Part shown: piece after piece, positions 29,854 to 52,936 of the stretch
Layout: the number at the start of each line of letters is the position of its first letter
Position numbering within the stretch: position 1 is the stretch's first letter
Assembly (NCBI GenBank): GCA_950097015.1
Contig: CATNEN010000001.1
Location: forward strand, 24,428,001 to 24,492,000
DNA length: 64,000 nucleotides
Origin: Macrostomum hystrix
Lineage: Eukaryota; Animalia; Platyhelminthes
Direction of reading: 5' to 3'
Program-made: the position numbers and the translations under genes
Notes under the pieces: generated by a model
Databases searched by the model: none
Told to the model about the DNA's origin: nothing
What the model saw: the letters and a program-made list of their open reading frames with translations, nothing else

Positions 29854-30041
29854 GAGGTGAAGTTTAATATTGAAAAAAAGACTTAGGATCCTAAATGCAA
29901 GCGGAACCTTGATTTCTTTCAATCGGACTTTGAACTCAGTCCAGCTTTTTGTAATAGGAAGAAAATGTGACACTTCTGTAGCTCCAAAATGTGACACTTT
30001 TATGCGAACTCTTGTAGGGCCATAGACCCCATGCGTTTATT

Positions 30042-30127
30042 CATCTAACGGCCGCCGGCTAGCCGACACTTCCACTAGTCAAAAAATACTCGGCTAGCCG
30101 GGTGATTCCACGTGGACCCACGGGGGG
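30042..30127 (+). repeat. Left terminal inverted repeat
   Basis: CATCTAACGGCCGCCGGCTAGCCGACACTTCCACTAGTCAAAAAATACTCGGCTAGCCGGGTGATTCCACGTGGACCCACGGGGGG. Confidence 0.9.
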
Positions 30128-30207
30128 CTAGCCTTACTGGCGGTGGCCTTGGGGGAATTGCATTCCTAACCCACGTGCATGTAGTAAGAAACTATATAAA
30201 TAACTTA

Positions 30208-31139
30208 TTTCCAAACATATAGGGAAGCCATTTTTACGGCGTAGTGTAGAATAACTTCGACTAAGTAGCTCAATGAGATACATGAGATACATACATGACA
30301 AGGCCATTTTTCAAAAGAAACCAAACTAGAATCCTTGTCCCTAGAACTCAAAGAACTCGATATGGAAAACTCTTGCATAATGAATTATAGCTTTTTGGCT
30401 AGAACGGCAAGAACTATATACAACACAGGCATATATGCATTTTAGAAATGAAATAGATGACAGATTAATAGAAAGGAGGAATGAAAAGAAAAAATGACAA
30501 AAAGTGAAAAAGTTTTATTTCGTCAATTACAAAAATCAGTAGTGGTTGGTAATCGAGCTAGGGACCTTCCGCATGCGAGGATTCAGCGCTACTCAACAAT
30601 CTACACAGACTTAATACAAGTGAAGGGAAAAAATATTATTATACTGGCTGGCCATAACACTAGCCATTTCTAGACATTTCCAAACATATAGGGAAGCCAT
30701 TTTTACGGCGTAGTGTAGAATAACTTCGACTAAGTAGCTCAATGAGATACATGAGATACATACATGACAAAGCCATTTTTCAAAAGAAACCAAACTTGTC
30801 CCTAGAACTCGAAAGAACTCGAAGCAGTGGCGAACGAATTTCGTATATGGAAAACTCTTGCATAATGAATTATATCTTTTTGGCTAGAACGGCAAGAACT
30901 ATAATACAACACAGGCATATTATATGCATTTTAGAAATGAAATAGATGACAGATCAATAGAAAGGAGGAATGAAAAGAATAAATGACAAAAAGTGATAAG
31001 TTTTATTTCGTCAATTACAAAAATCAAATGTAATTGGTAATCGAGCTAGGGACCTTCCGCATGCGAGGATTCAGCGCTACTCAACAATCTACACGGACTT
31101 GATAGAAGTGAAGGGAAAAAATGTTATTATACTGGCTGG
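30208..31139. repeat. Subterminal tandem duplication, 2 x ~450-470 bp
   Basis: The block TTCCAAACATATAGGGAAGCC...TATACTGGCTGG starts at ~30209 and again at ~30678. A short inverted echo (CCTATATGTTTGGAAA) lies near the right end at ~52150. Confidence 0.85.
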
Positions 31140-33639
31140 TAGAAAGCCCAACTTAAAAGTTCTTTATCGTTCTTAATCGTTCTTTCATTCTTATTTATTC
31201 TATACCGTAACAGTTGAACCTAAAATCTGTAATTTAGAAGATACAAGAGAGAATAAGTATACAATTATAAATATAGGAATGAATAAGTAGAAGCTAGGTA
31301 TGTAAGTATGCATAATTTAAAAATTTGGCGCGTTCCGATGCACAAGATTGAGATTCTAAATAGAGGAAGAGGGACTGTGTTTCGTACATTAATAAGGTAA
31401 TAGTTTGGTATCTTATCTCCCTCCCGAGTTCCGGCCAACAAATGAATTAGTAATGAATTTCGATTGCTAGGGACCATTGAAAGGTTACACGATCGATCAT
31501 AACCAATTGTGAATTATTTGATATTTTTTGTTTTCTGCAATCTAAATTCGAAATTTATTCATATACATTCTGTTTTTATTAAACGTTGCTTCATTTTGTG
31601 TTCATATGTGTTTATTTTGGTACGTCCCAATTCCTTCACGCAAACTAAACTCCCGGACGATAAAATGTTACGTAAACACGTTAAAACAAAACAAACGCTA
31701 AAAACAAAACGTAGAATTAGTAAAAAATCTCATTTTATTGCACAAAAATTAAAATTGCTTTAACAGTTTTTAGTTACAGACAAGCGCTTTATTGACTTGA
31801 AATTTAAATTTTAAATTACAGTTTTTGCGGTTGTTTTATTCCTATCCAATATTCTATCCTATTCTATTGTAGTATAACTGGGTTTGAAGGCCGCGAATTT
31901 AAACAGTTTTACTACAGCAATTTAACGTCTTCAGTTTACACGCCGCGCCGCGCCTTACACTTACAATCGATTGCAGCGCGCTTTTCAAACTGGTGCGATT
32001 ATATTTTAATTAGACAACGATTAAAATAATTTATAATTTATATTTGCATTATTTTCAAGGGTCATAAAAGTAGAAATTAATAACATAATAATGTTATTTG
32101 CAATCGCTATAGTTACTGTATAGCAACAATTAAATATTTAGCGCAATTTTAAAAGAACATTTCCAGCCGCACTACACTATGCTATCCTAAACCGATTAGG
32201 TTACTTGTGTTAATTATCTACTGATACTACTACTAGATAATAGATCGATTCTTAAATCTTTAATTTATTTTGAAGTCTCAGTCAAAAGCATTGCGATTTT
32301 TTTGTCGCAGCGCATTTTTATTGCAAAATAGTAAATATAAAGTTTCTAATTAATTTAGATTAAATCGTCAAATTAGCTATTTGTTAAGGTAAGTATGACT
32401 GTCAGTGCTTTCTATTCACTCATAGGCCCCTATTTTCCTTAAATATGTTGCCCGTAGTTGTATAGACAACTAATATAATTAATAATTTTTTATTAACCAT
32501 GCTTCCAGGGCCTAGCTGTGTCCCATAGGAAGTGCTTATTCACATGGTCCTATGCTGATAATTTCAATTTTATCCACGTGGTCCTATGCTGATAATTTCA
32601 ATTTTATCCACGTGGTCCTATGCTTATAATTTCAATTTTATCCATATGAATCCATGCTCAAAATTTATGCTTATCTGCTGGTGTTTTGTTTTGCAATCAG
32701 TCCTAAAAACAGACTGGCTGGCTGCCTATATCGATCACCCTCAAACTGCAGCCAATTAAACCTGCCACAGAAAATGAATTCCACTGAGCAATGTAGAGAG
32801 CCTGGCACTTGCTGTCACAGCTAAGACCTGTGATTTCCTTTGGCAAATCAAAATCCCTCTGGGCTTTGAGACAGACAGACCCATCAATTGAAAAGGCAAG
32901 AATCTCATAACTTTAGTCTCCATGTAAAACGGAACAAAAAGGGAGCCTCACAGTGATATCACCTGCACAATTCTCTCTCACTAGCTGGCCTGAAGAATCA
33001 GCAACAAAAGTTTTAGTGTTGGAGCACAATGCAATAAATCTAGGATTGCCTAGACTTTCCAGCTCACCAGACTGGAATAAACATAATCCAACAATCATAT
33101 GTACAAAAACATTCAAGACACAATAGTTTTGATGACTATAGTTGGTTGTAGTGTCTCAAACAAACTTTTCTTGTACAACACTTAAGCATGCAGATAACGC
33201 CTATGCCATATCTATCCATAGTGTGGATCATGTAGTGCAGACAAGAATTTTCCTGTGTGTATTTTCAGAAGTGGCATGCAGTGGTGTACAAATTGGTCAG
33301 TGGCCTGCATAATGCACACTACATAATTACACTGGCATGGCAATGTTGCCAATGCATTTATGCATGCAGCAAAAAACATATTCAACTTTTTTTTAAATCT
33401 ATTGTATATTAACAGTATAAATAGAGAAACAAAAATTAACATTTGTCTCCACTTGATTTGTGTTGCCTATGGATGAGTTAGCTCTATGTAGCAATGTATG
33501 CAGTGCGCTGCACGTGGCCTACATCTTGAATGTGCATTGACTTCCAAATTGCAGGTACTGCTTGACTGTTTTCACCTGCCTGTGACCAGTCACTTTACAG
33601 ATATTGGCATTTGAGTAACCAACATCAGAAAACTCCTTG

Positions 33640-33786
33640 CAGAGCTATTGCTGCGGCTGCCTCATGGAATGGTTGGAGCAGCAAATCAAACATGTCGACA
33701 CCGGTGACGCCCATCTGAAGTGGTCCCAGACCCTCTGACTTGGCCACCAGCTGGAACACGTCCATGGCGGCAAGAAGGTCGCTGCT
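33640..33786 (-). pseudogene. Second partial copy of the SAM-methyltransferase exon
   Basis: Near-identical to 43172-43322 (SDLLAAMDV...GVTGVDMFD) but with CAA where the other copy has TAG. Confidence 0.6.
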
Positions 33787-34029
33787 GTTAGCGGCCTGAT
33801 TATGCGAACATCCGATGGGATTCCAATTGCTCTAACAGACATTTGACATTGTTCTAAAATAAGAAAATGCAATGAAATTTACAGAATTTTATCATGTAGT
33901 CTAAAAATTTACTGCAACATGCTAACAAAATATGTGTTAAATTATATTCACCTCATTGAAATTGGAAGGAAATCCATGGAAGTAAAGATGAAAATTTTCA
34001 AAGTCGTTTCTGAAATATTTGTTTTTATA

Positions 34030-34990
34030 CGTAGGGTGTCCCAGAAATAGCGGGAAAAATCGATGCACAGGCAAACTGGTGCAACATAGTTTATTGAAAC
34101 TTACGTCACTGATATATAAACATTCAGCAGTTCTAATGCTTTTTAAATCAAGTAAATATGTCAACTCATTAAAAAGTTTTAGCTAAAATTAGAACAAGGG
34201 GTAAGGGGTAGAGTTACACCAAGTCAAGGCCAGCGGAATCGGTCACGCAGCATCGCCATTGCTGACCTACTTCTTTGACTTAGCGGCAGGGAGCCTCCAT
34301 GACAGACGCAGCGAGGAGGCGGCCGGTGCCGCCCATATCGCTAACCCCTGGCAGCATCGCCATCGCCGTCGACTGACGACTTTTCGACGAAGTCCCCCTT
34401 AGCTCGCAGCACTTAGTCCATCGCGTGAGAAGCGCATTGATGGCATCTGCATAAGCTCGACGCGGAATTTCGTGCAGCAGAACCCGCCTGAATTCACCTT
34501 CCAAGTTGTCGCGATGGTCAAAGATGCGCCCCCGCAGGTGCTTCTTTAACTGAGGGAAAATTGCGTAGTCGCAAGGAGCTAAGTCTGGTGAGTAGGGTGG
34601 GTGCGCAAGCAGATCAAAATTGAGTTCGTTGATACGATCAAGCGTTTTCTTGGCCGTGTGAGGTCGAGCGTTGTCGTGCAACAGGAGGTGAGGCTTCATC
34701 GCAGCCCTGCGCTTGTTGCGGATGTCTGATTTCATCTTAGTCAGCGTCTCCGTGTACCGGTCCGAGTTAACCGTGCTGTTAGGCCCAAGGAAGTCGATGG
34801 TCAGGGTTAGACCCAGAAGGGTCAGGTCAACCTTCTTGATCGAAGAAAAGGGTCAGCATGATCTTCTTGCAGTGCTGGTCTCGCTTCGCTTTCACAGGTG
34901 GATCTGAACCCTTCAACGCCCACACCTTGCTTTCTGCTTGGTCTCAGGGTCAAAGTGCGGTATCCAGGTTTCATTGCCGGTCACCAGATA
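34030..34990 (-). mobile_element. 5'-truncated, frameshifted mariner (DD34D) transposon nested in the large element
   Basis: LLLHDNARPH...HPPYSPDLAPCDY..F..LK..LRG in ORF 34280-34735. VTGNETWI-like motif near 34960-34990. TIR-like TAGGGTGTCCCAG at ~34032. Confidence 0.85.
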
Positions 34991-35762
34991 GGGTGTATCT
35001 GGTATTCGCTCGTATTTTAAGCGAATTTTTTTGAAGTTCTGTAAATTCTGTAAATTACCGAACTAGGCTACAACAAGCAAAAACAATTACAGTTTAGCAT
35101 ATGATAGCTGCCTAAATTCCTGATGTACATAAATATATATCTCGGCTCCATTAGTAAAAAAACACTAACCTGGCAGTTCAATCGCCCAACAGGCTACCTT
35201 CTGCCGCATTCATTTGAGCTGAAATTGGTAGGGATATTATACTCAAATCGCCAGAAGTATAATATCGCCAACTTAAATACTAACGTTAGTTTCCCTTTTG
35301 ATTAGTCAAGATTAGTAAACATAGAAGCACAGCCGTTAATTGGCTGCGAACTTTTAATATCTGATTCAATATTGGGAACACTTTGAACTGCAGACTTCAC
35401 CTCTAAGTTGTTTAAAGTACTTATTGGTCTCAGTTGCTGCAAGCTGTTGAAACATGGCACAATGATTTCAACCGCTACAACATATTGAACAGAAACTACT
35501 TAAAAATAAATGAAAACGAAAAGTAATAAATTCCAGATCTACCTATCAATCAGACGAGCCAAGAGCTTTCACCTTTAAAGGCATTTTCCGGTAGATTATT
35601 TAACTCTTAGTCGTTATGATTATATTATTATATATTTTGCGGTGCCCTAAAGTAGTGGATACAAATAATAAGGATTCAAATAGTCCTGGTCAAACATGAT
35701 ATTTGTTGCATTATTAAACTTCATTAAATCAAATTAAAGTAAGTACATTTTACTTATTTCAG

Positions 35763-38442
35763 ATGTACCGTTTTAAAACCCTGAAGAAAACACGCAAGGT
35801 AACTTACGTTTCTGGCCTGCGTGGACGACCAAGATCAACAAAATACTCTGCCGGTAAAGACTGTTGGAATCAACATAGTGCTAAATCTGCAGTTCAAAAC
35901 ACTTCTGGCACGTCCAGTTCTGTTTTTCAAGAAGCAGATTTCGACTTTGAAAGTTCGTCCGATTGCTTTATCGAGTGGGAAAATTATGATTCATTTGTTG
36001 AAAATTGTTCACCGAGTTATCGGAAGTCATTTATTTTGAGCCAGTGCATACGCTGCCGAGAAAACCAAGGTATTTTTCGCTGTATAACCTGTAACGTGGA
36101 TCTATGTGCTGACTGCAAGGAAGTAACTCATGGAGATTTCGTTGCTCATAAATTTCTACTCTGGAATGTAAGCAAACCTACATATATTTAGTGATCTTTA
36201 GCTCATAAGTGCACTTTTTTAAACGAAACAAGAAAAAAAGATCTCAACAGCAATTTTAGCAATCTATGCCAATCAAAAATGTAAACTAAAATGTAACTTC
36301 CTCCCGCAGATCGATCTACTGATGTTTAGTGAGGAAACTTCCGGGGCAGCCATATCTTTTCCAAAACTTTACTGCTGTAATGACTGTGCGAGAGGCAAAG
36401 TATTTAATGCAGCGAGCAACGTGCAGTTAATTAACATAACCGGAAGCGTCCAGGCAAAAGTTTTTACATGTGCAGCATGCGACACCTGTTGTGCTTTGCT
36501 GTCTCAGGGCTACTTCCCTGCAACGGCTTCATCAGATGGCGAATGTTTAACTTTTTTTTTCCTTTAGTTTCCTTTCACTTCTTGATTCAATGTGCATGGA
36601 TGGACAGTTGCCTATGCATAGAGCAATTCACTCATTCTTTAAGGGCACAGTCGTGGGACAAGGTTGCTGGAGTCCAGACTTAGCGAAGAGTGTCTACCAA
36701 CGTATTCAGCGGTACGGTGTACTTTTGCGCTTTCGCGAGTTGCAAAACCATAATTCATGTTGGCCAAAAACATGCCTAAGTTGCCCAGAAAAAAACTCTA
36801 AACGCAAGACTGTTCTATGTGGTGATGGTCTCTTCGGTTGGCAGCAATTTGCAGCGTCGGGTGGAAAGCAGAAGGATTTACCAGGTGATGGTCGTATTTT
36901 GCCTGAACCTCTTATTTACGTAGATGGAAATTCTCAACAAGGTTCTACTGTCCATCATCCTGAGCCTGACAGTTGTCCTAACTGGAGAGCTGGTAGTACA
37001 ACTAAAGAGACCTCGAGAGGTGCCTCACGGAACAACGTCTATGGATTCTTTGGTCTGTTCTGCAGACACAATAGGCTTGTGACAGGGTGTAATATAAATA
37101 CTCCAGGAGAGCGTCTTTGCTATCCAGAGGAATGCCTGCTTCATTATTTAAAAACGACGCCAGTGTCAAAGCATCTACTGTTTATTTATGACGTTGGTGA
37201 GTAATCCGATTTAACATGCGTACAGTTTAAATCATATCATTATAATTCATACTTCGTGCAAAATATTTTTAACAGTTTTCCAAAAAATATTGAAAGTGGC
37301 ATAAAAAGTTTTCTTGCTCGAATATACTCGAAATCGTTTCAATTTCAGGTTGTCGTGTCTCCAATCGGGTCAAGTCTATCGTTGCACAGTCCGGGGCTGA
37401 TGTCCATAGCAGCATGTGTGCTGTTAATGCGTTTCACGTCCTTGGACATAAAACTAGCTGTCAGCTGAATTTATCCGTACGCGTTACTCCGGGAGCTGGC
37501 TTGTGTGACGGTGAGCATTCTGAACGAGCCTGGGCTGCCTTAAGACCGTATGGAAAGTTTTTTAAGTACATGCGGAATGATCGGAGGACAATGTCCATAT
37601 CCCATATTTTACACAATTTCAATGCTCAACAACTTTTAAATGCACATGTGTGGTTTGCGCAAAGGTTGAAATTGATTACAACTACCTCTACAGCAATAAA
37701 AAACGAAATTCAAGCTCTAATGCATGAAATGGCTGTCTTAAAAAATTCTGGTTGTATTGACACTCGCTTTGACGTATCGGATGAGCAGATTCTGGTCTTA
37801 GGCCAGCAATGGCATATGGAATCAATTTCGGGTCACGCCTCTCTTGAAGAAGATACGCTGGGCTCTTTAAGGTCAGTTGCCACTCAAAGAATATATTGGC
37901 TTAGAGAACTTGGTACTTCCACAGGTCAAAGTCGAACAAAAAGTTGTGCTCGTAGAGTTTTTAGTCTAACTTCGGAAATGCAGAAACTCTATTCCAAATT
38001 GCCACAAAACTATAGACCAACTTTTACAGAACTTCAAAACCCTAAGCATAGCTTCTATTCCGGAATTGCTAAAAACGATTTTACAGGAAGCTTTCGTAGA
38101 CGCGCCATTGACGTAAGTCATAAAAAAGAGAGGCTTGATGAGGAAAAAAACTTTCTTTTTGATGAATGGCGTGATATTCAGAAGCGTATTCAAGAGCATT
38201 GTATAACTTTAGAAGGTCAACCAGGTCTACCGGCACACTTTCACCGACTGTTTCAGATTATTTACCGGCAAATTGAAAGTGTCCCTATAGCAATGCTCTC
38301 AGTCAACCAAGACTCAATCCAAAGTTTAACTCCCACGGTTGACAGTTTAGACAAAAATGATTCTAACGAACGACTGGACGATCTAGATAACTCATTCAAT
38401 TCAGCATCAGATGATTCTGATGATGACGAGACCGCGTGTTAA
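35763..38442 (+). CDS. KDZ (Kyakuja-Dileera-Zisupton) superfamily transposase with N-terminal B-box-like/CxC zinc clusters (~794 aa); one +1 frameshift in a T9 run
   Basis: Exons 35763-36167, 36310-37196, 37349-38442 (GT-AG). Motifs: CxxC..CxxC..LCxxC..H..H; GYFPA; CLSCP; CGDG; GFFGLFCRH; GER..YP; IYDVGC; NAFHVLGH..C; GAGLCDGEHSERAW. These match the KDZ catalytic core (D, D, E with the H/C cluster). Removing one T at 36552-36560 restores the frame. Confidence 0.85.
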
Positions 38443-38544
38443 ATATATATTAGCAGCTAAGTGCATCAAACCAAAAAGTCTCATAATATTTAAGTCAAAA
38501 TGCAACACTTTACTATTAAGTATCTGCTATCTGACACAAAAAAA

Positions 38545-39221
38545 TGCTGGGACTGTCAATGTGCATTCATTGCTTTGACATTTTTCCCTCTGCAAAAAAC
38601 TAATGCTGGGATTGTCAATGTGCATTCATTGCTTTGACATTTTTCCCTCTGCAAAAAACTAATGCTGGGATTGTCAATGTGCATTCATTGCTTTGACATT
38701 TTCCCTCTGCATAAAACTAATGCTGGGATTGTCAATGTGCATTCATTGCTTTGACATTTTTCCCTCTGCATAAAACTAATGCTGGGATTGTCAATGGGCA
38801 TTCATTGCTTTGACATTTTTCCCTCTGCATAAAACTAATGCTGGGATTGTCAATGGGCATTCATTGCTTTGACATTTTTCCCTCTGCATAAAACTAATGC
38901 TGGGATTGTCAATGTGCATTCATTGCTTTGACATTTTTCCCTCTGCATAAAACTAATGCTGGGATTGTCAATGTGCATTCATTGCTTTGACATTTTCCCT
39001 CTGCATAAAACTAATGCTGGGATTGTCAATGTGCATTCATTGCTTTGACATTTTTCCCTCTGCATAAAACTAATGCTGGGATTGTCAATGTGCATTCATT
39101 GCTTTGACATTTTCCCTCTGCATTTGTCAGATAAATTTTTCTTTCACGAACGTGACGCGCCTCATCGTGGCGTGAAAGTGAACAGTGCGCGTTTCAATCT
39201 TTTGCACTGGCCAAGACGTCA
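38545..39221 (+). repeat. Internal inverted repeat, left copy: ~10 x 58/59-bp units plus ~100-bp unique end (...GGCCAAGACGTCAC)
   Basis: Reverse complement of 46980-47360. Confidence 0.9.
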
Positions 39222-40634
39222 CTACTAGTTAGTCTAGGTGTTTTACAACCTTCTGTACTGAATATCCACGAACCAATCACTTCATATATTTTATTCTATC
39301 TATTCACATTCTTTATACCCAGAAATTTGCTGTTATAGTAGACTCCCTCTCACAAAGTTGACCTATTTTGTCTTGTTTCCGGTACGTAAATCAAGAAATC
39401 AAAGCAATGAACGCTACTTTTAGTTTAAGATTTAGTATCATTTGCGATTCAGCTCTCAATCTGCGTGTTCTCAATATAATTTCCTGCTTTCATTCATTTT
39501 TTCCCTATGTTCCGTGGTGCACAACTGCTGGACTGGAGAACAATCGCACTCGGCACCAAAAGATGTAGTGGCACTTTTAGGCTTAAATACAGGTAAAAGA
39601 TGCTTTTAATTACTTAAATTTGTGACTTATTTATTGAATTTTATATTCAAGTTCAATTCCCACCCTGCCAGGAAATGCGAACTGGACTCGACAGTTTAGA
39701 TTATTCGGAGGCAGCCTTTCAAAAACAGTGGCGAAGCCTGTCTGTCACGAGCAGAAACCGTAGCCGGCCGTCAGTGTCGGCCACCTTCGCGATGCGCGGT
39801 TTCTCAATGTACGACGGAAGATAATTGCATATTATGCACTGTCTGCATCTACCCATCTAGCCGACTAGCGGGCCTGCCATCCCACCAATGCAGCGCTGGA
39901 ATACTGAGTACTGGTTGCTAACTGCAAAGATACATGCTTCTCACCTTAATTTGATATTATTTTGCGCATTCTCAAGTCCGTGTACTCTGTACTTACCCCC
40001 TGTTGAGCAGTTATTGCAATATGCACATTTTTCTTATTTACGAGTAGCTAGTAAATATACAAATTGTACTTCGTCTTACTGCTTGCTAATAAATAAGTAG
40101 CTTACGAAATGCGCCCGATACCATCCCGTATAAAGCCAGTCTTAAATGGCGCATATTTTGTTACACCTACTGTGAGAAGCCTACTATGAAAGTGGTTGAT
40201 AGTATATAACGACGTGTTATTCTTTGGAAATTATATGCTTAACATATCGCCATTCCAGCATTAAAATAATTTTGTGTACAATTTGTTACTTAATAAAAAA
40301 TTAATCAATTTTCGATATGTACAGCAAGCAAACCGATGCCTTAAGTACCCAAGTTCAGCCGACTGTACTTTTGAAAAAACAAGAAAGTGTTTCGTGTTTA
40401 AGATTTTAACAGTAACGGCATTGAGGTCGATTGCTGGTAATGTACTGTACGTATCGAGTACAATCGTAACAAGTAGCTCTACATGTACCTCAATCTCAGC
40501 AAAAATTAGATTAATTGGATGTCAGTATAGAAGTGGATTTCTCATCTCAATCTGATACGAATTTAACGCCAAAAGCCCCAGAACTCTGTTTCCTGAAGTG
40601 CAAGTGTAAATTAATTGTCATGATAGTCGAATTT

Positions 40635-42001
40635 AAGCAGTATGTATTCAACTCAGTGTAACCACTGATGAATCCGTAAATGTACCCTCACTTCAACAGT
40701 TCAGATAGTCAACTATAAGCCGTATATATTCAACTCAGTGTAACCACTGATGAATCCGTAAATGTACCCCCACTTCAACAGTTCAGATAGTCAACTATAA
40801 GCCGTATATATTCAACTCAGTGTAACCACTGATGAATCCGTAAATGTACCCCCACTTCAACAGTTCAGATAGTCAACTATAAGCAGTATATATTCAACTC
40901 AGTGTAACCACTGATGAATCCGTAAATGTACCCTCACTTCAACAGTTCAGATAGTCAACTATAAGCAGTATATATTCAACTCAGTGTAACCACTGATGAA
41001 TCCGTAAATGTACCCCCACTTCGACAGTTCAGATAGTCAACTATAAGCCGTATATATTCAACTCAGTGTAACCACTGATGAATCCGTAAATGTACCCTCA
41101 CTTCAACAGTTCAGATAGTCAACTATAAGCCGTATATATTCAACTCAGTGTAACCACTGATGAATCCGTAAATGTACCCCCACTTCAACAGTTCAGATAG
41201 TCAACTATAAGCCGTATATATTCAACTCAGTGTAACCACTGATGAATCCGTAAATGTACCCCCACTTCAACAGTTCAGATAGTCAACTATAAGCCGTATA
41301 TATTCAACTCAGTGTAACCACTGATGAATCCGTAAATGTACCCCCACTTCAACAGTTCAGATAGTCAACTATAAGCCGTATATATTCAACTCAGTGTAAC
41401 CACTGATGAATCCGTAAATGTACCCCCACTTCAACAGTTCAGATAGTCAACTATAAGCCGTATATATTCAACTCAGTGTAACCACTGATGAATCCGTAAA
41501 TGTACCCCCACTTCAACAGTTCAGATAGTCAACTATAAGCAGTATATATTCAACTCAGTGTAACCACTGATGAATCCGTAAATGTACCCTCACTTCAACA
41601 GTTCAGATAGTCAACTATAAGCCGTATATATTCAACTCAGTGTAACCACTGATGAATCCGTAAATGTACCCCCACTTCAACAGTTCAGATAGTCAACTAT
41701 AAGCAGTACATATTCAACTCAGTGTAACCACTGATGAATCCGTAAATGTACCCTCACTTCAACAGTTCAGATAGTCAACTATAAGCCGTATATATTCAAC
41801 TCAGTGTAACCACTGATGAATCCGTAAATGTACCCCCACTTCAACAGTTCAGATAGTCAACTATAAGCAGTATATATTCAACTCAGTGTAACCACTGATG
41901 AATCCGTAAATGTACCCCCACTTCAACAGTTCAGATAGTCAACTATAAGCCGTATATATTCAACTCAGTGTAACCACTGATGAATCCGTAAATGTACCCC
42001 C
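40635..42001. repeat. 82-bp satellite, about 16.5 highly homogeneous copies
   Basis: TATTCAACTCAGTGTAACC recurs at 40645, 40727, 40809 and onward, with period 82 and no unique spacers. Confidence 0.95.
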
Positions 42002-42659
42002 TAAGTTTGTAGAACAGGTGCACATCTGGAATCGCGCATGCCGTTATTGGATAGCCCCTGATGTGCCGTCAAAAATTCAGCATCCGAAACTTAAAAAAAT
42101 AACGATATTCGCACTTCAAAAAACTAACTTTTAGCTTTTGATGAATAAAAGTGCTAATTTTCTAAAACGCATAACAAAAATTAAGAGATTTTAAAGCTAA
42201 GGCCCTATTTGGCTATCACCGGGGTCATTATGTTTTACACTTGCTTCCGTTAGAAGCTCATAGCGGATGAAAGTTACGGGATAGATGAAGTTGAGGGTAG
42301 AAGCTTGCCCACTGAGCTCAGGCAGAATGCCGAATAAAATAAAGAACGCTGATAATAGAAAGGCCAAAAGTATTAAAATTGGTGAGCGTAATGTCTTTTG
42401 CTCGCCTCAGATTTGAACTCAAGTGACTCTGGGTTTTCGCTCATGCAAGTAATAGCTGGTTTACTAATAACGCAGACTCAAACCACACAAGGGATGATTC
42501 ACACGAAGGAATAAACGACTCAATGAACTTAATAAACAGGTTAGAGCCTAATAAACAAATAAACACAGAGGATAAGCGAGGCTGCTTACTAATAGAATTG
42601 ATAAGGTGATGCTGCTTACTCATAAAATTGATAAGGGTTTCAAACAATTTTCCTAAGAT

Positions 42660-44160
42660 CTGCGTCTAGCACCAGCAGCAGATAATCAACAACAGCGTTA
42701 ATAGCAAAAATGACAACACAAATTATTGCACTTTTAGCAGCTGCGGCAGCCAGTCGGTGACGAAACTTGTCTTAGAGCCGCACCTCGGCATAGCTCAGCA
42801 GGATAAGGTCGTAGCAACATCCGTAGTCCCACGTAGTCTCCGTAGTCTGCTAGTTAGTAATAAAAAATTGAAAATTATGAAAAATATATTCAAGTTTTTT
42901 TATAAAATAACTAAAATTAATAAATAATAAATAAATAGAGCAAAGAAGTAAAATCAGGGACATTCCATCGTGGGCCAATTCCTTATATACTTATTTATAA
43001 CAAACATATTTATAACGAACGTTTCAATAATATATAAAATACAAACTACAAACCAAGATTAAATTAAGTTAACGGATGCGCACCTGACATGACTTATAGA
43101 CTTTTCTTTGGGTTTTAGTTGTCCCTGGCTGTGGCCCAGGTGAAACTGCTCCGGGAAGCTGCTGATTAGCCCCTGCAGAGCTAACGCTGCGGCTGCCTCA
43201 TGGAATGGCTAGAGCAGCCAATCAAACATGTCGACACCGGTGACGCCCATCTGAAGTGGTCCCAGACCCTCTGACTTGGCCACCAGCTGGGACACGTCCA
43301 TGGCGGCAAGAAGGTCGCTGCCTGGGCCGCAGCCGAGTGACAGGACCTCATAGCTGGTGCTGCTGGTGTTTGAGCCCATGATGGCGTCATAGAGCTCAGC
43401 TTGAATCAGCTGGCGAATGGACAACCGCTTCTTCGGGAGCTCGCACACTGTGTATGCGGCCCTAAATTCACTAGATTGGTAGAACCCTAAGTTTCCTTTG
43501 TCGCCTGACTGACTGGAAAACAAAAGTAGAATATTTTACTAATTTCAACAAAAATGTTTTTAAAATATATTTTGTGAGCACAGGCTATGGAATCTGAGTC
43601 TCTATAGCACCTGAGTCTATCCTATCTAGGCCAATGAGATCTGAGTCTATGCCATGAATTTCTATCTGAGTATGAAAAGGCAAAATAATGAAAATAGGAG
43701 ACAAACACATCAAACACATTGAGATTAACCCGGCTTAATTATATAATAATTAATTAAGAAGTCATATTGCTTAAAAAAACACAGAGGATAAGCGAGGCTG
43801 CTTACTAATAGAATTGATAAGGTGATGCTGCTTACTAATAGAATTGATAAGGTGATGCTGCTTACTCATAGAATTGATAATGTTTAACGGGTTTCAAACA
43901 ATTTTACTAAAGCACTCCCGCTGGCGCACCGGCTCGATGTCATTGTCGATGACGAATATTCGGCTGCCAAGTCTTAACACGTGAAACAAAGCAACTATGA
44001 TGATTTCTAGAGAAGCATCATAGTTGCTTCTATGATGCTGCAGCAGCAGTCAGTCAGCAGTCAGCCAGTCAGTGACTGATCTACCAGACTGGATGCTCGT
44101 TGACACTACGTACTTTCCCTCCGAGGTCCACATCGCCGAACTGGCTGGCGGGCTGGAAAA
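42660..44160 (-). pseudogene. Scrambled, stop-containing exons of a class I SAM-dependent methyltransferase
   Basis: 43513-43085 reads VLSLGCGPGSDL (motif I) ... GVD (motif II) with an in-frame TAG. ~42830-42780 reads YDLILLSY (motif IV-like) then TAA. ~43990-43910 reads LFHVLRLGSRIFVID (LKPGG-like). An intron/acceptor segment is duplicated at 43516 and 44153. Confidence 0.6.
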
Positions 44161-44269
44161 CAAAAGTAGAATATTTTACTAATTTCAACAAATATGTTTT
44201 TAGAGAGGCAGTCGATATCGAAATAATTATGGAAATTCGTCAGTAATAAGATAGGGCTTATAGGGCCCG

Positions 44270-44425
44270 ACTTTCTCATCGTCTGGCAGTGTACACTATC
44301 GCTGTGCCCCTAAGTCTTCTCTCCGCGGCTGCGTTCAAAATGAATGTGGCCTCGCCGCGGAATCGAGCTCAGGGACCTCGGTGCGAGAGGCCAACGCGTT
44401 AGACCGATTTGCCACTCACCCGGCC
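44270..44425 (-). mobile_element. tRNA-derived SINE family A, head region
   Basis: The minus strand reads GCCGGGTGAGTGGCAAATCGGTCTAACGCGTTGGCCTCTCGCACCGAGGTCCCTGAGCTCGATTCCGCGGCGAGG, which is tRNA-like. Homologous to the copies at 22209 and 54090. Confidence 0.65.
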
Positions 44426-45581
44426 CTAACCAATGTTACAAGCTCACTGAGTAGGAATTTTGTAGCTTATCTCAGCTGTTTACTACACAAAATGATTGAA
44501 GCAAACAACAATTTTTTTCTAATTGTTGCTTTATTTGAATGGAATAAAATGAGCATATGATGAGCAGCGATAAGTAAATAACAAAACAGAGCATTAGTAG
44601 AGCTAACTAACATTAACACAATACAAGAACGGTACGTTTTTTGTATTTTACTACTGCAATATCTATAAGAAAGTATTAAAATAACAGTGCACTATATCTG
44701 AATAACAATTTTATATTAATTAATAAAGGTTTGTACTAGCTAACTATATTTTTGTAGAAAGCTTTGCACGTTAAAAAAAAAGAACGGGAATTTAATTTGG
44801 CATAGAATTTAATTAGCGAGACATTGTAAACATATATGCTCATACTTAATTACATTCGTGGAGCTTAGTAAAATAACTTTCGGAGCACTAACACAAGCTC
44901 CAAAATTTATGGCAATCATTTTTCATCTCCATTTTTGGATATTTTCATTTTGAATTAGTGCTACTGATACTGATACTGATACTGGCACTGCTACTGACGT
45001 GTCAGAAAGACGTGGCAGTGTCTATGGAAAGTGTGAACGAACTGTTCTGTGTTTTATTGTTTAAAATCATTTTCATAGATTTTTGAGCTTGTGTAACACT
45101 ACCCCTGACCTTCGCGCACGTTTCTTGCTGCAGCTCCTGAATAGAAAAAGATATGAACATGATTTTAATTTTGTTTTCTTTCTGACAAAATTTCCTTTCA
45201 TTTGACACCATGGGCGTGAAATTTCATGGCTCCGTTGAAGAGCAACGTTGGACATTCCGGGAACTTTTGGGACACCCCTCGTAATATTTATAAAAAATCG
45301 AATGCTTTTAGTTCAGAAAAACACACGCAAAGGATGAATGTATAAGTACTTATAGGCATTGTAGTTTACAGACAAGCAAGCGGCGACAAAAATCGCAGTT
45401 TTTATCTTACTGAGTACGGAGATACACCCGAATTAGTAGTAGTAAAAACTAAAATTATTAATCGTTTAAAGTCATTTTTACCATAAAAAAACTAAAAAAA
45501 TTAAAAAGCAGCTGTCGCATTTTCGCTAGAGAAAAACGAACAAAACTTGCCTAATTTTCTACCTAAATAAATGTTAGCCCA

Positions 45582-46429
45582 TCAATGTACGCCGGCACCA
45601 TTGTTGCCAATGCCACCGGTGCCGCTCTCGCCTAGCAACAGCCGCGAGTCGTCCATCAGGCTGGGCTGCGGTCTCTTAGCAACCAATGCGCGAGGCAGCT
45701 TGTCGTGGTACAACTGATAGACGTCACGGTCGGCCGGACAGCTACAACGGAAGGCCTCGCATTCGTACATGGCCGAATAATAGGCTTGCAGATGCTGCAG
45801 CTCTGATGGCACATCGAAGTCGCGATAGAACTGAAATGTATCGACGATGCGAACAATTGAATCACGCCTGTCTCATCTCTCTGATCTCACCCAAGACGTC
45901 TCATCTCTCCGATCTCACCTCACCCCTGTCTCGTCTCTCCGATCTCACCTCACCCCTGTCTCATCTCTCCTCTGTCTAATCTGAACACTGTCACATGCAT
46001 CTTGGCCCTGATTCATGTCTTCACTGTCTCATATCTTCCCTGTTTTATCTCCCGTCTTATCTCTCCTCTGTATAAAACTGTGCCGTGTCTTACATCTTCC
46101 ATGTCACATCTCTCGCCTGTCTCATCTTTATCCTGTCTCATCTCTTTCCTATCTGATTTCACAGTCAATACCGACCCGCATTCATTTTAGAATCTATCTT
46201 TAGCCCGCTGGAGCTAAATAGACTCTGAGATTAAAAAAGCATTCGAACCCTGGCAGACAAACAGGGAATTCTACCTTAGCGGCCATTTTCAGATGATGCA
46301 GTTTAGGCATGAGTTGGCAATCCGCGTAGGTTAGCTCATCTGAGAGCAGGTAGCGACAACTTAGCGACAATTTGTACATGTGGTTCGGACTGCGCGGCTT
46401 CGGTCGATACTTAAGGCGCAGAGGCTCAA
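45582..46429 (-). pseudogene. CLIC: Captured 3' fragment (last two exons plus intron) of a chloride intracellular channel (CLIC/EXC-4-like) gene
   Basis: Exon 46429-46275 (...RYLLSDELTYADCQLMPKLHHLKMAAK|GT) and exon 45830-45582 (FYRDFDVPSELQHLQAYYSAMYECEAFRCSCPADRDVYQLY...) match the invertebrate CLIC C-terminal domain (DCxLMPxLxH..A.K; AF..SCPAD). No upstream exons were found before the internal IR at 46980. Confidence 0.75.
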
Positions 46430-46439
46430 CTGGATCACA

Positions 46440-46985
46440 CCATCAGCAACATCACCTCATCAATTCTATGTGACAGCAGCATCATATTATCAATTCTATA
46501 AGTTAGCAACATCATATTATCAATTCTATAAGTCAGCAGCATCATATTATCAATTCTATGTGACAGCAGCATCATATTATCAATTCTATGTGTCAGCAGC
46601 ATCATATTATCAATTCTATGTGACAGCAGCATCATATTATCAATTCTATGTGTCAGCATCATCATATTATCAATTCTATAAGTCAGCAGCATCATATTAT
46701 TAATTCTATGTGACAGCAGCATCATATTATCAATTCTGTAAGTCAGCAGCATCATATTATCAATTCTATGTGTCAGCAGCATCATATTATCAATTCTATG
46801 TGACAGCAGCATCATATTATCAATTCTATAAGTCAGCAGCATGATATTATCAATTCTATGTGACAGCAGCATCATATTATCAATTCTATAAGTCAGCAGC
46901 ATCATATTATCAATTCTATGAGTCAGCAGCATCATATTATCAATTCTATAAGTCAGCAGCATCATATTATCAATTCTATGTGACG
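46440..46985. repeat. 30-bp minisatellite (CAGCAGCATCATATTATCAATTCTATGTGA) in the CLIC intron
   Basis: Direct array. Related inverted units occur at ~42580-42635 and ~43795-43880. Confidence 0.92.
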
Positions 46986-47360
46986 TCTTGGCAAGTGCAA
47001 AAGATTGAAACGCGCACTGTTCACTTTCACGCCACGATGAGGCGCGTCACGTTCGTGAAAGAAAAATTTATCTGACAAATGCAGAGGGAAAATGTCAAAG
47101 CAATGAATGCACATTGACAATCCCAGCATTAGTTTTATGCAGAGGGAAAAATGTCAAAGCAATGAATGCACAGTGACAATCCCAGCATTAGTTTTATGCA
47201 GAGGAAAAATGTCAAAGCAATGAATGCACAGTGACAATCCCAGCATTAGTTTTATGCAGAGGAAAAATGTCAAAGCAATGAATGCACAGTGACAATCCCA
47301 GCATTAGTTTTATGCAGAGGAAAAATGTCAAAGCAATAAATGCACATTGACAATCCCAGC
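46980..47360 (-). repeat. Internal inverted repeat, right copy (GTGACGTCTTGG... plus ~5 x 58/59-bp units)
   Basis: Reverse complement of the distal part of 38545-39221. Confidence 0.9.
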
Positions 47361-47532
47361 AATATTTGACAGAATATAGACTCTAGTCCCTGTAAAGATA
47401 GCAGCTCTCTGCACAGTGACTATTTTCGGCTGAAAACATTGAAAACCATAGCATATTGCATCTTAAATATACTATCTAATATTAAGCTATTGGCGTCGTG
47501 TGGGCCTCTAATAATTGTTTCATATTAAAATT

Positions 47533-48785
47533 TCATTCCGTTTGTCTAGTATCTAGTCTAAGCGTAATGTTGGGTGCAGAGCTCGCCCCATATAAAGATG
47601 ACTGAGCAAGTCTATTTGCGTCATTTACAAATGGAGTATTGAAAGGATTAAAATTTGTTGAACTTTCACTTTCGTGAAAGTGTTGCCGATATTTCGCGGT
47701 TACAGAAGTCAGTGCCGTATCTCCTTCACTCTCCAAGTCACTTGTGGTGATATTATGGTAGTCATCGACTTGTAGCCCTTCTTCCATCACTTGAGCCTGT
47801 TGTTGATGCAGATGAGAGGCACTTATTGGTGTATCATGATCAGGTGATACATCAATGGAAACTGAATTACAAAATGTCAGTTCTGTATTTTCGAGTTCCT
47901 TTAAAATGGCTACACATTTTTCTCTGGATAAGTGATGGGGGTCCTTCAATTCTGGAATGAATTTGCAACTTCTTCCGACAAGGCTCCATGGAATCTTGCC
48001 GTCGAAACCTGTCGCTGTTTTATGTGCAATTTTAGCCCTTAAAAAAATTTCTTGTCGCATTTTTTTCACATCGCTATAAACAGAAGCTAGGTTTCGTGGC
48101 TGACTAGTTTCAGCAAGCTGAACATCACTGCGCTCATTTGCCATATTTTGTTGTTCTGCTTTTTTCGCGTCATCCATTAGTTCTGCTATTTTATTTATAT
48201 GGGGCTCCATAGCGCTTCTAACATTAGGCGATATGTCATTGGACGTGGTAAAATCGGTTCCACGTCGGGTTAATATAATAAGTACGTATGTCTCACCTGT
48301 ACGTTTTAAATCATTTACCACTTTTCTTATTTTCTTCTGCTGATTTTTAGCTTCTTCTTGAAGACGTCGCTTTTCTTCGATTGGCAGACTCATATACTCG
48401 CGACGCAGTTCGGCGGTCCACACTAGAATTAAAGGAAGATTTGAATTTTTAAATTTTACCAAAACATAGTGACTAATTATTATATTTATTTATTTCTAGC
48501 TTTTATGTAAATTAATAGATGCACCCCACAGAGAATATAACATATGATGTAGCCTAGAAAATACAACAATATTCAAGACTTTTAGAAAAAAACAATGTTA
48601 TGCTGCATAAATGGACTAAAATGTTTTGTATTAAAAATAATGCTGCCTACTCATACATTACTATTTCTTGAGTTCTAGTCTTACTATATATCCCTGTAGT
48701 ATATTTTTAAGTAATACTGACCATAAGAAAACTTACCTGCCTTTCCTTTGTTTTGCAAAAACACATTGGCACCAGTTAGAACCAT
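47533..48785 (-). CDS. Two-exon element-borne gene (~312 aa) with a degenerate HMG-box-like N-terminus
   Basis: Exon 48785-48737 (MVLTGANVFLQNKGKA, g|GTAAGT) joins exon 48422-47533 in phase 1 to give MVLTGANVFLQNKGKAVWTAELRREYMSLPIEEKRRLQEEAK. The HMG-like assignment rests on pattern only. Confidence 0.6.
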
Positions 48786-49192
48786 CTGTGTGTAAGAAAA
48801 AAATTAGAATTACAAAATAAAACCATTTTATTGCACTATTTCTTATGCACTTTAATTTAAGACTCAAACTGAAATACGAAGCTTTAGTGCCTACTTTATG
48901 CTTTAAAATTTGAGTTAATTTAAATTTAAATTTCCTTTGTTTCTTTTTTTGGTTTGATAATCTCAATTTCTTATAATATTGGCACCAGTTAGAACCATCT
49001 GTGTGTAAGAAAAAAATTAGAATTACAAAATAAAACCATTTTATTGCACTATTTCTTATGCACTTTAATTTAAGACTCAAACTGAAATACGAAGCTTTAG
49101 TGCCTACTTTATGCTTTAAAATTTGAGTTAATTTAAATTTAAATTTCCTTTGTTTCTTTTTTTGGTTTGATAATCTCAATTTCTTATAATAT
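48767..49192. repeat. ~212-bp tandem duplication covering the acceptor/start of the HMG-like gene
   Basis: Visible as the duplicated peptide in ORF 48733-49179. Confidence 0.85.
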
Positions 49193-49687
49193 AATCAGTA
49201 CTGACCATAATAATCTTATTTCATCTTGTAACTCTTGTATTATGTATGCCTGTACCATAATAATATAAAAATATTATAGGGGTAGGGCCTAGTGAGAATA
49301 TTATGTCACAAAAGGGTTGCTGTTCTATAAAAAGGTGTACAAGCGCATGGCATAAATTTACTTTTGTTTGCAAAATTATTTTTATGAATAAATTTAAAAT
49401 TGCGCTAAATGAAACAAAAAGTGCAGTGCAGAAACAATTCAGTTTATAGTATTCGTAACAATTCAGTTCAATTCAGTTCAGTTCAGGTTAGTTTAGTTTA
49501 CTTGGCTGTTATATAGCCACAGGGTAGTAGTGACAAATCCAGTAAAAAATGCTACAGAATGCTTGGAAGTTGGAAGCTTGGAAATATTGCCTGATTGAAG
49601 TCACTAATAAAGGTTAGAAATGTAGCTGCGATTCTTTCTGCTCTTTGGATGCTGCCGAGCTGGTTATGGCCAAAGATAATTATGAAA

Positions 49688-50169
49688 GGCAGTGCTTATC
49701 CCCACGGTACCGTAGAAATAATTTTTGTCTTATTCCTACGGTACAGTGGGAATAATTTCCTGCTTATCTGCACGGCACACTGATGAGATAGCTGTCCTAT
49801 CTTCAACATAGCTCCAGAGATGCGTAAAGAAATAGACTGGATTATAGGCTTAGAAGGCTTGAGCTATAAGATTATAAAAATACACACTTCAGTTGTATTC
49901 TTTTAAATATATAAATAATAGCAATATATATTTTTTATACTTAAAAAGCCACCGTATTGGTTAACTAATTGCAAAAAAGCAGAAAACTTTTATTTGTTTA
50001 CTTGCTTTTAAAAACCGGAAGAAAAAAAATTGCAGTCACGATAAAAAGATAGATGATTAGGACAGCTATCTTATCAGTGTGCCGTGCGGATAAGCAGGAA
50101 ATTATTCCCACGGTACCGTAGGAAAAAGACAAAAATTATTTCTACAGTACCATGGGGATAAGCACTGCC
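49688..50169. mobile_element. 482-bp MITE with ~110-bp TIRs and a 9-bp TSD (Mutator-like by TSD length)
   Basis: GGCAGTGCTTATCCCC...AGCTGTCCTA is inverted at 50058-50169. ATTATGAAA lies at 49679-49687 and 50170-50178. Confidence 0.88.
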
Positions 50170-52299
50170 ATTATGAAAAATTCCACACCACATTATTTAT
50201 GCCAGGTATATTAATTATTATTGTTGCAAGGCAGGTAGTAACGTTGTACAATTTTGGGAGGAGCAAAAAATTGTTTTGACATGCACTCTACCACTTTTCT
50301 GACTATGGCATGGTAGGGGGTTAAAGCTATAACAAATCTGATTAAAAATGAAATCAGCACATCAAAAAGCCTTAGTAGCCACAGATTTATCATCCTATCA
50401 AAACAAGAACTATTTTATATAGACCTAAAGTTCAAGAGACCCTCGCCTCCCCGCTGGGTCCATGGACCACCCTGCAGCTAAGTCTAGTAAGTCAAAGTTC
50501 AAGAAGCCCAAAAAGCAAGCAAAGTTAAAATGTATTAAAAACTTGAAGTCTATACTTTATAGCAATTATCATTTTGGTTTAAAAAATTTAGCTAGTCAGC
50601 CAGACCACTGACTGATAATTTGGATATAAGTTGCATTAGTAACACTCTTAGTAGTTTAGTCTTAGGTTTTAACTAACATCTATTATTAACTTTACATGTA
50701 ACATTTTCATTGTGTCAGTTAATAAATGTTGAAAATCAAAACAATTGGATTGGGATTTCGATTTGCTGGCATAAGTAGTACTAGTAACTAAATTTAAAAC
50801 GAAAAAACATTTGTTATAACCTTTGTTATAAAAAAATTAATAGAAAATTTCAATACTTAAATTGACAAAGTAACTTTAAAAAATACCTTCTCTAGACACA
50901 GTAAAGTACAATCTGTTATGGATGTAATGATATCCTAAGTGTAAAATACCAACTAAACTAGTTTGGTGGCGCAGCGCATTAGGGCGCGTTTTTTATTTAA
51001 ACAATTCTAAACTATTGAATAAAAACTTAAATAAAAAATTATACTACAACGTAACTAAGAAAATCTTTTTTTGAGAAGTACTAATACACTTTTTTTAATG
51101 CGCATACTTAGTTCTGTATAATTATTTGTTATACCATACGCACGTAAAGTTATGAAATTGACGTAAAATCCGGACTATTCAGACTCGTTTTTGACATGTA
51201 AAAAGAGTATTTATAAAAATACAATTCTTTCTTTCCATGTAACACTAAAAAAGTGACGAATTCTATAGACAAATGAATACAATTATATTGAGAATGATTG
51301 CAGAAGGACTGCGGGCAATGGCACATCATTTAGTGACACTAGACCCACAGCGAGCTATTTTTTGCTAATACCTTATTCGGATCATTGTCATAAATAATTA
51401 CGAGTACATAATCAGTCTTACTTGTTTCTGTTTCGTTTCTTTTAAGGCACTGTAGAGTTATACCGCTATACTTTCTGGAATTTTAGAACTGATTCTGGTT
51501 CTGGAATTCTGGGTAGAATGAATGACTGATTCTGATTTCTGGGTAGAATGAAAAGCCTATTTTACGGGTTGGAGAGCTGGGTAAAACAGCTTTAATTTAA
51601 TTTTTTAATTAACTGCCCGCCGTCAAAAATAAAGCCAATATAATCTAGCAACCAAGTTATATAAATATGAGTAATTTAAAATTAAAATAAATATGATTTG
51701 ATTTTGTTTTTGTCTTATAACTAGTATAAATATGTCTTTCTATGCATGTATAACTCAACCTGTGTGGCGTGTTGATAGAGAGAGCGCTCTGTTTGAGTGT
51801 TACGAGGGGGGTTCGAATTTTTTCCGTATTATTTTTACTAATGAATTTTTTTGATCCGATATTTTATTGTGATGCTAAATATTTACTAATTATTTCGTTT
51901 TATAGCCATTTTATACAGTGGATGTGTTGTAATTTTAGTTCTGGCTTCTGATAAGCCATTAAGCCCTCGCTGTTAAGGTGGAAGTATCATTTGTTTGAGA
52001 CGGGGTGATCACTTCTTGGTTCTTACTTAGCACGATAGAAAAGCGTCATATATCTATTACACGTAAAATCCACTTAATCAGTAAGTCCCATCTAAACTCA
52101 TTCAGCTTTAGTTGTATTGTATTAATTAGTATGAACTGTGGTTTGCTTGCCTATATGTTTGGAAATAAATGATTATCAGTGCAAAGGAAAAATATTTAGA
52201 TAGCCAGTTACATACTTCATATTTCATACTTTCTACTTGCAGTAGACGAGTAGCATGATCCATGTAAAATTTATCGGAAGTCTACCCCCTACCCCCTAC

Positions 52300-52385
52300 C
52301 CCCCCGTGGGTCCACATGGATTCACCCGGCTAGCCGAGTATTTTTTGACTAGTGGAAGTGTCGGCTAGCCGGCGGCCGCGAGCTG
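52300..52385 (-). repeat. Right terminal inverted repeat
   Basis: Reverse complement of 30042-30127. Confidence 0.9.
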
Positions 52386-52936
52386 GTTTATTCCAAGTTA
52401 TAAAGTGGAGAAAAAGACGAGATTTTATAGTCTATGAATTCACCCTCCTCTGCTGGACGAGGGAGGGTTTGAATGTACATTAAAGTCCTGTCAAGGCCTT
52501 TCGCTTAGAACGCACAAACCCCCAACCCCCACAGACTGTACATTAGGGCTTGTAGAGAGAGGGGGATAGAGATTTTCACGAGTTATCTAAAATCTTGCGA
52601 CATGCCTGACCCTTGTAGGTTTTTAACCGTAACCCCTACTATAATATTTAAGCACAATCTGTAAAACACAAAAACGGTGGAGGAACTTGGGCAACTATCG
52701 CACAATACGGTCATAGGCAAGCTAACTAGACTCGACTTAATAAAGCGAAGAGAAAAGGAAGAATACTGCGTACAGGCACTGCAGTGTAAGAGAATGGGCA
52801 ACAGCTGTTACCCAGGAAAAGAATTAGTGAATGAAAGAGGGAGCTAGAAGGCGAGCTCAGATAAGATCTGAATTACGTTGATCCTGCCGACCCGAGGGCT
52901 ACCTGAACTTGCCACTAGAAGAAAAATCTGTCCAAT

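Follow-up and report, generated by a model that had tools for sequence, protein, structure and literature searches.

A recently amplified family of large two-gene KDZ transposons with Kyakuja-like integration features in the flatworm Macrostomum hystrix

The 64,000-nucleotide stretch of the Macrostomum hystrix genome analysed here (hereafter the window) holds at positions 30042-52385 what is very probably one copy from a family of large DNA transposons that move by cut-and-paste, belong to the KDZ (Kyakuja-Dileera-Zisupton) class and have amplified recently. The class itself is already known; the family is very young and carries two genes. The element is 22,344 bp long with the termini CA...TG, its first letters being CATCTAAC and its last GAGCTG, and it is bounded by terminal inverted repeats (TIRs) at 30042-30131 and 52296-52385 which are 90 nt long, 93% complementary and separated by 22,164 nt. 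An earlier note on this DNA had described inverted termini of 86 bp, CA...TG and 22,344 bp apart, which was borne out with the length of the repeats now extended to 90 nt. The flanking direct repeat had been given as GTTTATT(C), of which GTTTATT indeed stands on both sides as the target site duplication (TSD), but the bracketed C is coincidental; an 8-bp duplication, GTTTATTC, was rejected because the eighth base is not kept in other copies, such as copy E2 with TGTACGC. The boundaries of the element in the window are as follows.

30035-30041, no strand: left copy of the TSD, GTTTATT, read from the sequence.
30042-30131, plus strand: left TIR, starting CATCTAAC, 100% identical at 13 genomic loci.
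52296-52385, minus strand: right TIR, ending GAGCTG, from the inverted-repeat search and genome matches.
52386-52392, no strand: right copy of the TSD, GTTTATT, read from the sequence.

The genome searched was the M. hystrix assembly of 220,453,370 bases in 42 contigs, which was built from an inbred line with PacBio reads and Illumina polishing and whose repeat content was left uncharacterised (PMC10468722). The left end recurred with 100% identity at 13 loci, nearly all of them paired with a properly oriented right end 22-32 kb away, which excludes a chance origin of the inverted ends. Full-length copies number about 13 (at least 13) and measure 22.3-32 kb, and the CATCTAAC...GAGCTG termini are present in all copies. 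We read the TSDs from both flanks of nine pairs among the TIR loci and from six completely retrieved copies, and the duplication was 7 bp long in all 12 readable insertion events (CCACTAT, TGTACGC, ACAGTCT, AGCCCAC, GAGACTG, AGTAGAC, CACCAGC, CTGCAAA, CTCGGCC and GTTTATT, besides two on contig C7), so that other copies of the TIRs carry TSDs as the earlier note had expected. On C7 one copy, C7-B, is nested after base 8 of the left end of another, C7-A, with bases 2-8 (ATCTAAC) duplicated, again 7 bp, and the nested structure as a whole is flanked by GCGCCTC (loci L010, L014 and L025). A head-to-tail dimer, as from a circle junction or a tandem unit, was considered for this locus and rejected on account of the nested insertion with its 7-bp ATCTAAC duplication. 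Copy C7-B is without exon 2 of the transposase gene described below and yet has transposed, which means that mobilisation in trans occurs. Copies E3, E5 and E6 together with two solitary ends sit in different members of one dispersed repeat, and uninterrupted paralogues of the repeat can therefore serve as empty sites. The empty site reconstructed for E5 aligned without gaps to L013:2913-3057, and that reconstructed for E3 aligned to the flank of E5.

The left arm encodes on the plus strand the KDZ transposase that had been proposed there, which was confirmed by a match to the Pfam KDZ family PF18758. Exon 3 scored 54-59 bits and exon 2 27-28 bits against a cut-off of 26.6, and the two halves of the profile meet at the splice junction, positions 4-125 ending at 37196 in exon 2 and positions 125-217 starting at 37349 in exon 3. 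The gene comprises three coding exons and a 5' exon, with GT..AG introns in phase and about 795 amino acids encoded.

32357-32388, plus strand: 3' end of a non-coding 5' exon, with a GTAAGT donor at 32389, cis-spliced to 35763 in an RNA contig.
35763-36167, plus strand: coding exon 1 of the KDZ gene, 135 amino acids with a B-box-like zinc finger, supported by an RNA joint and aligning to M. lignano N-termini.
36310-37196, plus strand: exon 2, with a putative CxC cluster and the first half of the KDZ domain; a run of nine T at 36552-36560 leads here to TAG at 36565-36567.
37349-38442, plus strand: exon 3, with the second half of the KDZ domain, a coiled C-terminal region and an acidic tail; Pfam KDZ 59 bits, open in the window copy.

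RNA contigs assembled from three public runs of two studies contain the joints 36167>36310 and 37195>37348, both at GT..AG introns. One contig extends upstream into 30 letters found at 32357-32386 of the window, followed there by the GTAAGT donor, which places a 5' exon in the left arm ahead of a 3.4-kb intron. Another contig carries CTGCGAAGACTCAATTTATTGCAT, which does not occur in the window but is found 75 times in the genome, in part as tandem units of 11.6 kb, and which equals positions 11-34 of the 35-nt spliced leader of M. lignano (PMC8629364). Taken together, the 5' exon contig and the spliced-leader contig indicate that the transposase mRNA is both cis- and trans-spliced. The leader is joined at 35762/35763 of the window, and its tandem units, about 11.6 kb apart on three small contigs (C15, C17 and C42), are presumably the SL (spliced leader) RNA gene arrays of M. 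hystrix. In one further RNA contig 88 nt of exon 2 with GT..AG ends (36881-36970) are spliced out, a minor alternative event with which the frame would shift.

Homology searches and alignment were run exon by exon, the exons never being joined into one protein. With exon 3 as query against 1.84 billion protein representatives, only seven matches fell below 1e-10, all from M. lignano, the best of them being 808 and 830 amino acids long and named 'B box-type' or 'CxC2 domain-containing'; the next relatives were sea cucumber and amphioxus proteins with CxC1/CxC2 and KDZ domains. These M. lignano proteins (PAA68011.1, PAA74961.1 and relatives) share the domain order at a length of 808-830 amino acids, are 42-50% identical to the exon translations and multicopy in that genome, and bear no annotation beyond that of hypothetical proteins. 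Between them the three exon translations cover P0001 and P0002 of M. lignano over their full length, with 37-50% identity to P0001, and the tiling spans both splice junctions (IYDVG|CRVS) as well as the T-run. The motifs GDGLFG, IYDVG and CDGE are conserved, and their D, D and E respectively align with the same residues in nine homologues, by which alignment they would constitute the catalytic triad. The KDZ protein would bind the ends and catalyse DDE-type excision and integration through 7-bp staggered cuts.

The right arm carries a second gene, convergent with the transposase.

47533-48489, minus strand: second gene, an open frame of 318 codons at 47536-48489 with no known domain and with paralogues in a second KDZ family.

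It had been taken for an HMG-like gene, an identification that did not survive, as its product matched no HMG family in Pfam at E<=10. A search of 5.8 billion protein clusters returned no homologue of this protein, its best score in the ESM Atlas was 0.89 to unnamed Basidiomycota clusters, which serves as a lead only, and a single-sequence AlphaFold model reached a pLDDT (predicted local distance difference test) of 48 and was unusable. Among the 13 copies the frame is open in 7-8. Paralogues do occur elsewhere in the genome, as open frames of 394 codons with 30% identity over residues 20-209; in a second KDZ family they are found some 20 kb downstream of the transposase gene and convergent with it (paralogue and transposase respectively at C7:11004598 and 10980838, C25:9666150 and 9642667, C26:1277590 and 1254394). 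As the same relative place is kept across divergent families, the second gene belongs to the plan of the element and is not random cargo. The second family, whose transposase is 45-51% identical in amino acids to that of the window family with open frames of 447 and 390 codons, has at least 14 near-identical copies (C1:19183998-19184867, C7:10980838-10982895, C25:9642667-9644724 and at least 10 more). Each copy has a convergent partner gene about 20 kb off, and this family looks larger and more intact than that of the window.

We aligned the window copy with six others (22.9-30.5 kb; L031-L049) and found all seven colinear end to end, the centre included, in agreement with the proposal that the whole 22.3-kb block had inserted as one unit. 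Mean pairwise substitutions stood at 0.23% and 0.44% for the left and right arms and at 0.28% for the centre (range 0.02-0.68%), and since the centre diverges as little as the arms it must have travelled with the ends throughout the burst. Copies differ in length through the unit number of internal tandem arrays, a 450-bp unit present once or twice near the left end and a few private indels, the largest of which is a 4.5-kb block in copy E1. The remaining features of the window copy are listed below.

30207-31139, plus strand: two tandem copies of the unit of about 450 bp, about 90% alike (element positions 166-610 and 635-1098), from colinearity; one unit in E5 and E6.
32536-32666, plus strand: 34-bp tandem repeat containing the motif TCCACGTGG, from the repeat search; the motif evidence is weak.
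33625-33872, minus strand: a second, shorter piece of the methyltransferase-like fragment, lying within the 5' intron of 3.4 kb, from sequence matches.
34280-34735, minus strand: C-terminal fragment of a Tc1/mariner-type DDE transposase, a nested relic found in all copies (Pfam DDE_3, 29.7 bits).
38543-39222, plus strand: 59-bp tandem array of about 10-11 units here, the number varying by copy, from the repeat search and colinearity.
40622-42001, plus strand: 82-bp tandem array of 16.8 units here and about 5.9 kb in E2, the main source of copy-length differences.
42736-43523, minus strand: class-I methyltransferase-like host-gene fragment, 92% identical in amino acids and 95% in nucleotides to the single locus C41:768729-769232.
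44891-45286, no strand: short dispersed repeat nested in the centre, present more than 25 times in the genome and frequently arranged as inverted pairs.
46443-46982, plus strand: 30-bp tandem array of 18 units, from the repeat search.
46980-47367, minus strand: 59-bp tandem array, inverted relative to that at 38543-39222 (288 nt, 98% complementary), from the repeat search.
48765-49192, plus strand: 213-bp tandem duplication in the AT-rich right arm, from the repeat search.

The centre of 7.8 kb had been described as host-derived, and this stands for about 0.5-0.8 kb, which derives from a host gene, whereas the rest consists of tandem arrays, the dispersed repeat and unique sequence of the family. 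Positions 42736-42834 and 43128-43512 match the single locus C41:768729-769232, which lies within a tandem cluster of paralogues, at 95-96%. The open reading frame (ORF) of 104 amino acids at 43209-43523 (minus strand) is 92% identical to a 248-amino-acid open frame at that locus, and Pfam gave weak methyltransferase matches to the fragment (E 0.05-0.3). This is a small gene fragment transduplicated from a methyltransferase-like host gene and fixed in the family. Along with the tandem arrays and the relics of other mobile elements, it travels with the element as non-coding ballast, and the unit number of three of the arrays sets the length of a copy.

Two other accounts of what moved here were weighed. 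By one of them the ends belong to another superfamily with duplications of 7-8 bp, P or hAT7-like, and the KDZ gene is a mere passenger. P elements and some hAT elements do make TSDs of this length, and an ORF with a THAP domain lies 44 bp outside the left end, but that ORF falls beyond the TSD, and the flanks of the other 12 copies are unrelated. Between the TIRs there is always the same KDZ gene, which sits at the same place in every full-length copy except the deleted C7-B, and no other complete transposase; the only other match to a transposase inside is a Tc1-type relic of 151 amino acids on the opposite strand within an intron, from a superfamily that makes TA duplications. As a 7-bp TSD with CA..TG ends is moreover an already reported signature of KDZ elements, namely Kyakuja (PMC12730594), we consider the passenger account extremely unlikely. 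By the other account the element is of Pack type or composite, and the centre is captured cargo or an independently mobile unit, as its bracketing by the inverted 59-bp arrays and its methyltransferase-like fragment, 95% identical to C41:768729-769232, might suggest. The centre is nonetheless the same in the seven compared copies, at 99.5-99.98% identity and in the same orientation, and no solitary centre units were found in the genome, where the only other matches were a relative on C11 of 84-86% and, at 14.63 Mb of C1, a copy of the family that has been rearranged. It is made up mostly of tandem arrays, and its host match of about 0.5-0.8 kb is fragmentary, a frame of 104 amino acids against 248 at the source. 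Such an origin is very unlikely, and the Pack-type gene-capturing system put forward in the earlier note must be given up for an element with constant content, mostly satellite arrays, a single small host-gene fragment and a transposase gene of its own.

A further alternative concerns how the transposase of this KDZ element is decoded. In the window copy nine T at 36552-36560 shift the frame to the stop TAG at 36565-36567, and the gene is otherwise open throughout, while copies E1 and E2 have eight T (T8, as against T9) and an open frame of 326 codons. The peptide ECLTFFSFSFLSLLDS of the T8 frame aligns with ELLTFFSISFLSTLDS of P0002, which identifies the T8 frame as the conserved one. E1-E4 carry a TAA at 38128, and in E1, E2 and E4 a 3-bp insertion at 37999 creates a stop. 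Transcripts of both the T9 and the T8 forms exist, and the abundant T9 contigs also carry the stop at 38128. By standard decoding the window copy cannot make full-length transposase, and it is either a passive copy moved in trans or dependent on recoding. T9 is shared by both sequence subgroups, T8 being confined to E1, E2 and probably C2, which are nested within one of them, so that by parsimony the founder of the burst was T9; this could reflect a recurrent homopolymer change, a polishing error, an open copy that was not assembled, or recoding at CUU-UAG. Under recoding the transposase would normally be decoded through polymerase slippage on T9 or through a ribosomal shift of +1 at CUU-UAG (36562-36567), and the window copy would be functional. 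The T9 founder, the otherwise open frame and the coexistence of T9 and T8 transcripts are in its favour, and a +1 shift at CUU-UAG would bring translation back into the conserved frame at the cost of only two altered residues. Homopolymers, however, mutate recurrently and are prone to error in assembly and polishing, the T8 transcript is explicable from copies of the E1/E2 type, and the mobilisation in trans demonstrated by C7-B means that the broken majority needs no recoding. We therefore regard recoding as unlikely. If true, it would amount to a frameshift-gated transposase in a eukaryotic cut-and-paste transposon, frameshift control of this sort being known mainly from bacterial insertion sequence (IS) elements and retroelements.

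Certain points weigh against the interpretation of the window as a copy of a young cut-and-paste KDZ family. In the profile searches KDZ lay above its cut-off, but CxC1 reached 19 bits against a cut-off of 26.9 and CxC2 12.8 bits; the cysteine pattern of the element aligns with homologues that pass CxC1/CxC2. The placement within KDZ is based on TSD length and termini and not on a tree with labelled references, and the empty-site evidence comes from paralogous sites of two other copies, E3 and E5. Against present-day autonomy, none of the 13 copies in the assembly has exon 2 and exon 3 both open, and in a PacBio assembly polished with Illumina reads the homopolymer lengths of a 13-copy repeat may be unreliable for the individual copy.

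The element was compared with known KDZ groups. TSDs of 8 bp are described for Zisupton and Dileera, and TSDs of 7 bp with CA..TG termini but no TIRs for Kyakuja (PMC12730594). It had been called Zisupton-like with an 8-bp TSD, a description that the 7-bp TSD (12 of 12), the CA..TG ends shared with Kyakuja and the lack of CxC4 and SWIM contradict, neither of these two domains giving a match at E<=1 in any transposase exon. The element is thus a KDZ element with Kyakuja-like integration features. With the Kyakuja elements of Agaricomycete fungi (Kyakuja-1_LB and Kyakuja-2_LB of Laccaria bicolor; PMC12730594) it shares the KDZ transposase, 7-bp TSD, CA..TG ends, large size and extra genes. The fungal elements are, however, described without TIRs and often with a TET/JBP dioxygenase, whereas the flatworm element has 90-bp TIRs, no TET/JBP and a B-box-like N-terminal finger; the only genomic matches to TET/JBP (PF12851) were on C1 at 5.26 Mb and C38 at 11.08 Mb, none being in any copy of the element. 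Fish Zisupton (Bohne et al. 2012, cited in PMC12730594 and PMC8226300) and KDZx1 of Cryptococcus likewise combine a KDZ transposase with recent activity, and the fish elements have TIRs as the flatworm element does. Zisupton differs in its 8-bp TSDs and in a canonical protein with CxC4 and SWIM, in place of the 7 bp found here and a protein in which neither domain was detected. The 'gigantic' cut-and-paste elements KDZ1-3 of Cryptococcus neoformans (Dileera clade; bioRxiv 10.1101/2024.08.15.608186), whose movement has been observed experimentally, resemble it in their long TIRs, in extra ORFs that lack known domains and in a cysteine cluster of CxC1 type, putative in the flatworm element, but measure 6-11 kb with 8-bp TSDs and 236-bp TIRs against 22-32 kb, 7 bp and 90 bp in the flatworm. 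Pack-MULE and Pack-CACTA elements likewise hold a host-gene fragment, but they are non-autonomous and their cargo varies by copy, while the flatworm element has one fixed small fragment and its own transposase gene.

An animal KDZ family is hereby defined by its ends, TSD, gene models, transcripts and copy history, in a class whose members with defined ends have been characterised mainly in fungi and fish. The 7-bp TSD and CA..TG ends of fungal Kyakuja occur in a flatworm too and can be combined with long TIRs, and the flatworm KDZ elements share a two-gene plan in which the second gene is without known function. The family, which is very young, is transcribed, can be mobilised in trans and tolerates 22-32 kb between its ends. 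Macrostomum is a laboratory regeneration model with limited transgenesis tools, which makes a native large-capacity cut-and-paste system of practical interest. With their internal satellites, the near-identical 25-kb repeats, about 0.3 Mb in all, are also a likely source of assembly and polishing errors in this genome.

Five of about 17 insertions and solitary ends of the family lie in one dispersed repeat that contains GGGGGCCAGTAGACAGTCT, at differing positions and orientations, as seen in the flanks of L003, L005, L006, L013, L020, L022 and L026; this clustering reflects a preferred target or else the abundance of that repeat. Both TIRs (30107-30115 and 52311-52319) contain the palindromic motif TCCACGTGG, which is also present twice within the 34-bp tandem repeat beside the 5' exon (32573-32615), has 16 matches in the window against 6.6 expected, and may be considered a candidate protein-binding site. 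A stretch of 4 kb at C38:27980650-27984713 is a palindrome of two diverged (93%) left ends with their flanks and has part of the 82-bp array of the element inside. We rejected it as a short non-autonomous derivative of the family, since its flanks are mutually inverted too, which identifies it as a palindromic duplication of a diverged end.

The THAP-domain neighbour in the window is an ORF of 318 amino acids at 29041-29997 (minus strand) with an N-terminal THAP domain of 66.9 bits and is not part of the element. Copy E1 is flanked on both sides, at a distance of 4-9 kb, by methyltransferase-like open frames of 439 and 512 codons (C39:1180572-1180817 and 1221636-1221881) which are 37-38% identical to the fragment of the element; this may be a coincidence. 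The extra 4.5-kb block within E1 was rejected as cargo, because it forms a nested element in its own right, with TIRs of 34 nt. This non-coding 4.5-kb element (L032:2732-7286, on C39), with TIRs starting CCCTAGAAAAAAAAAC and subterminal repeats of 42 and 95 bp, is a different DNA transposon that has recently been mobile too and is found in one copy of the family only.

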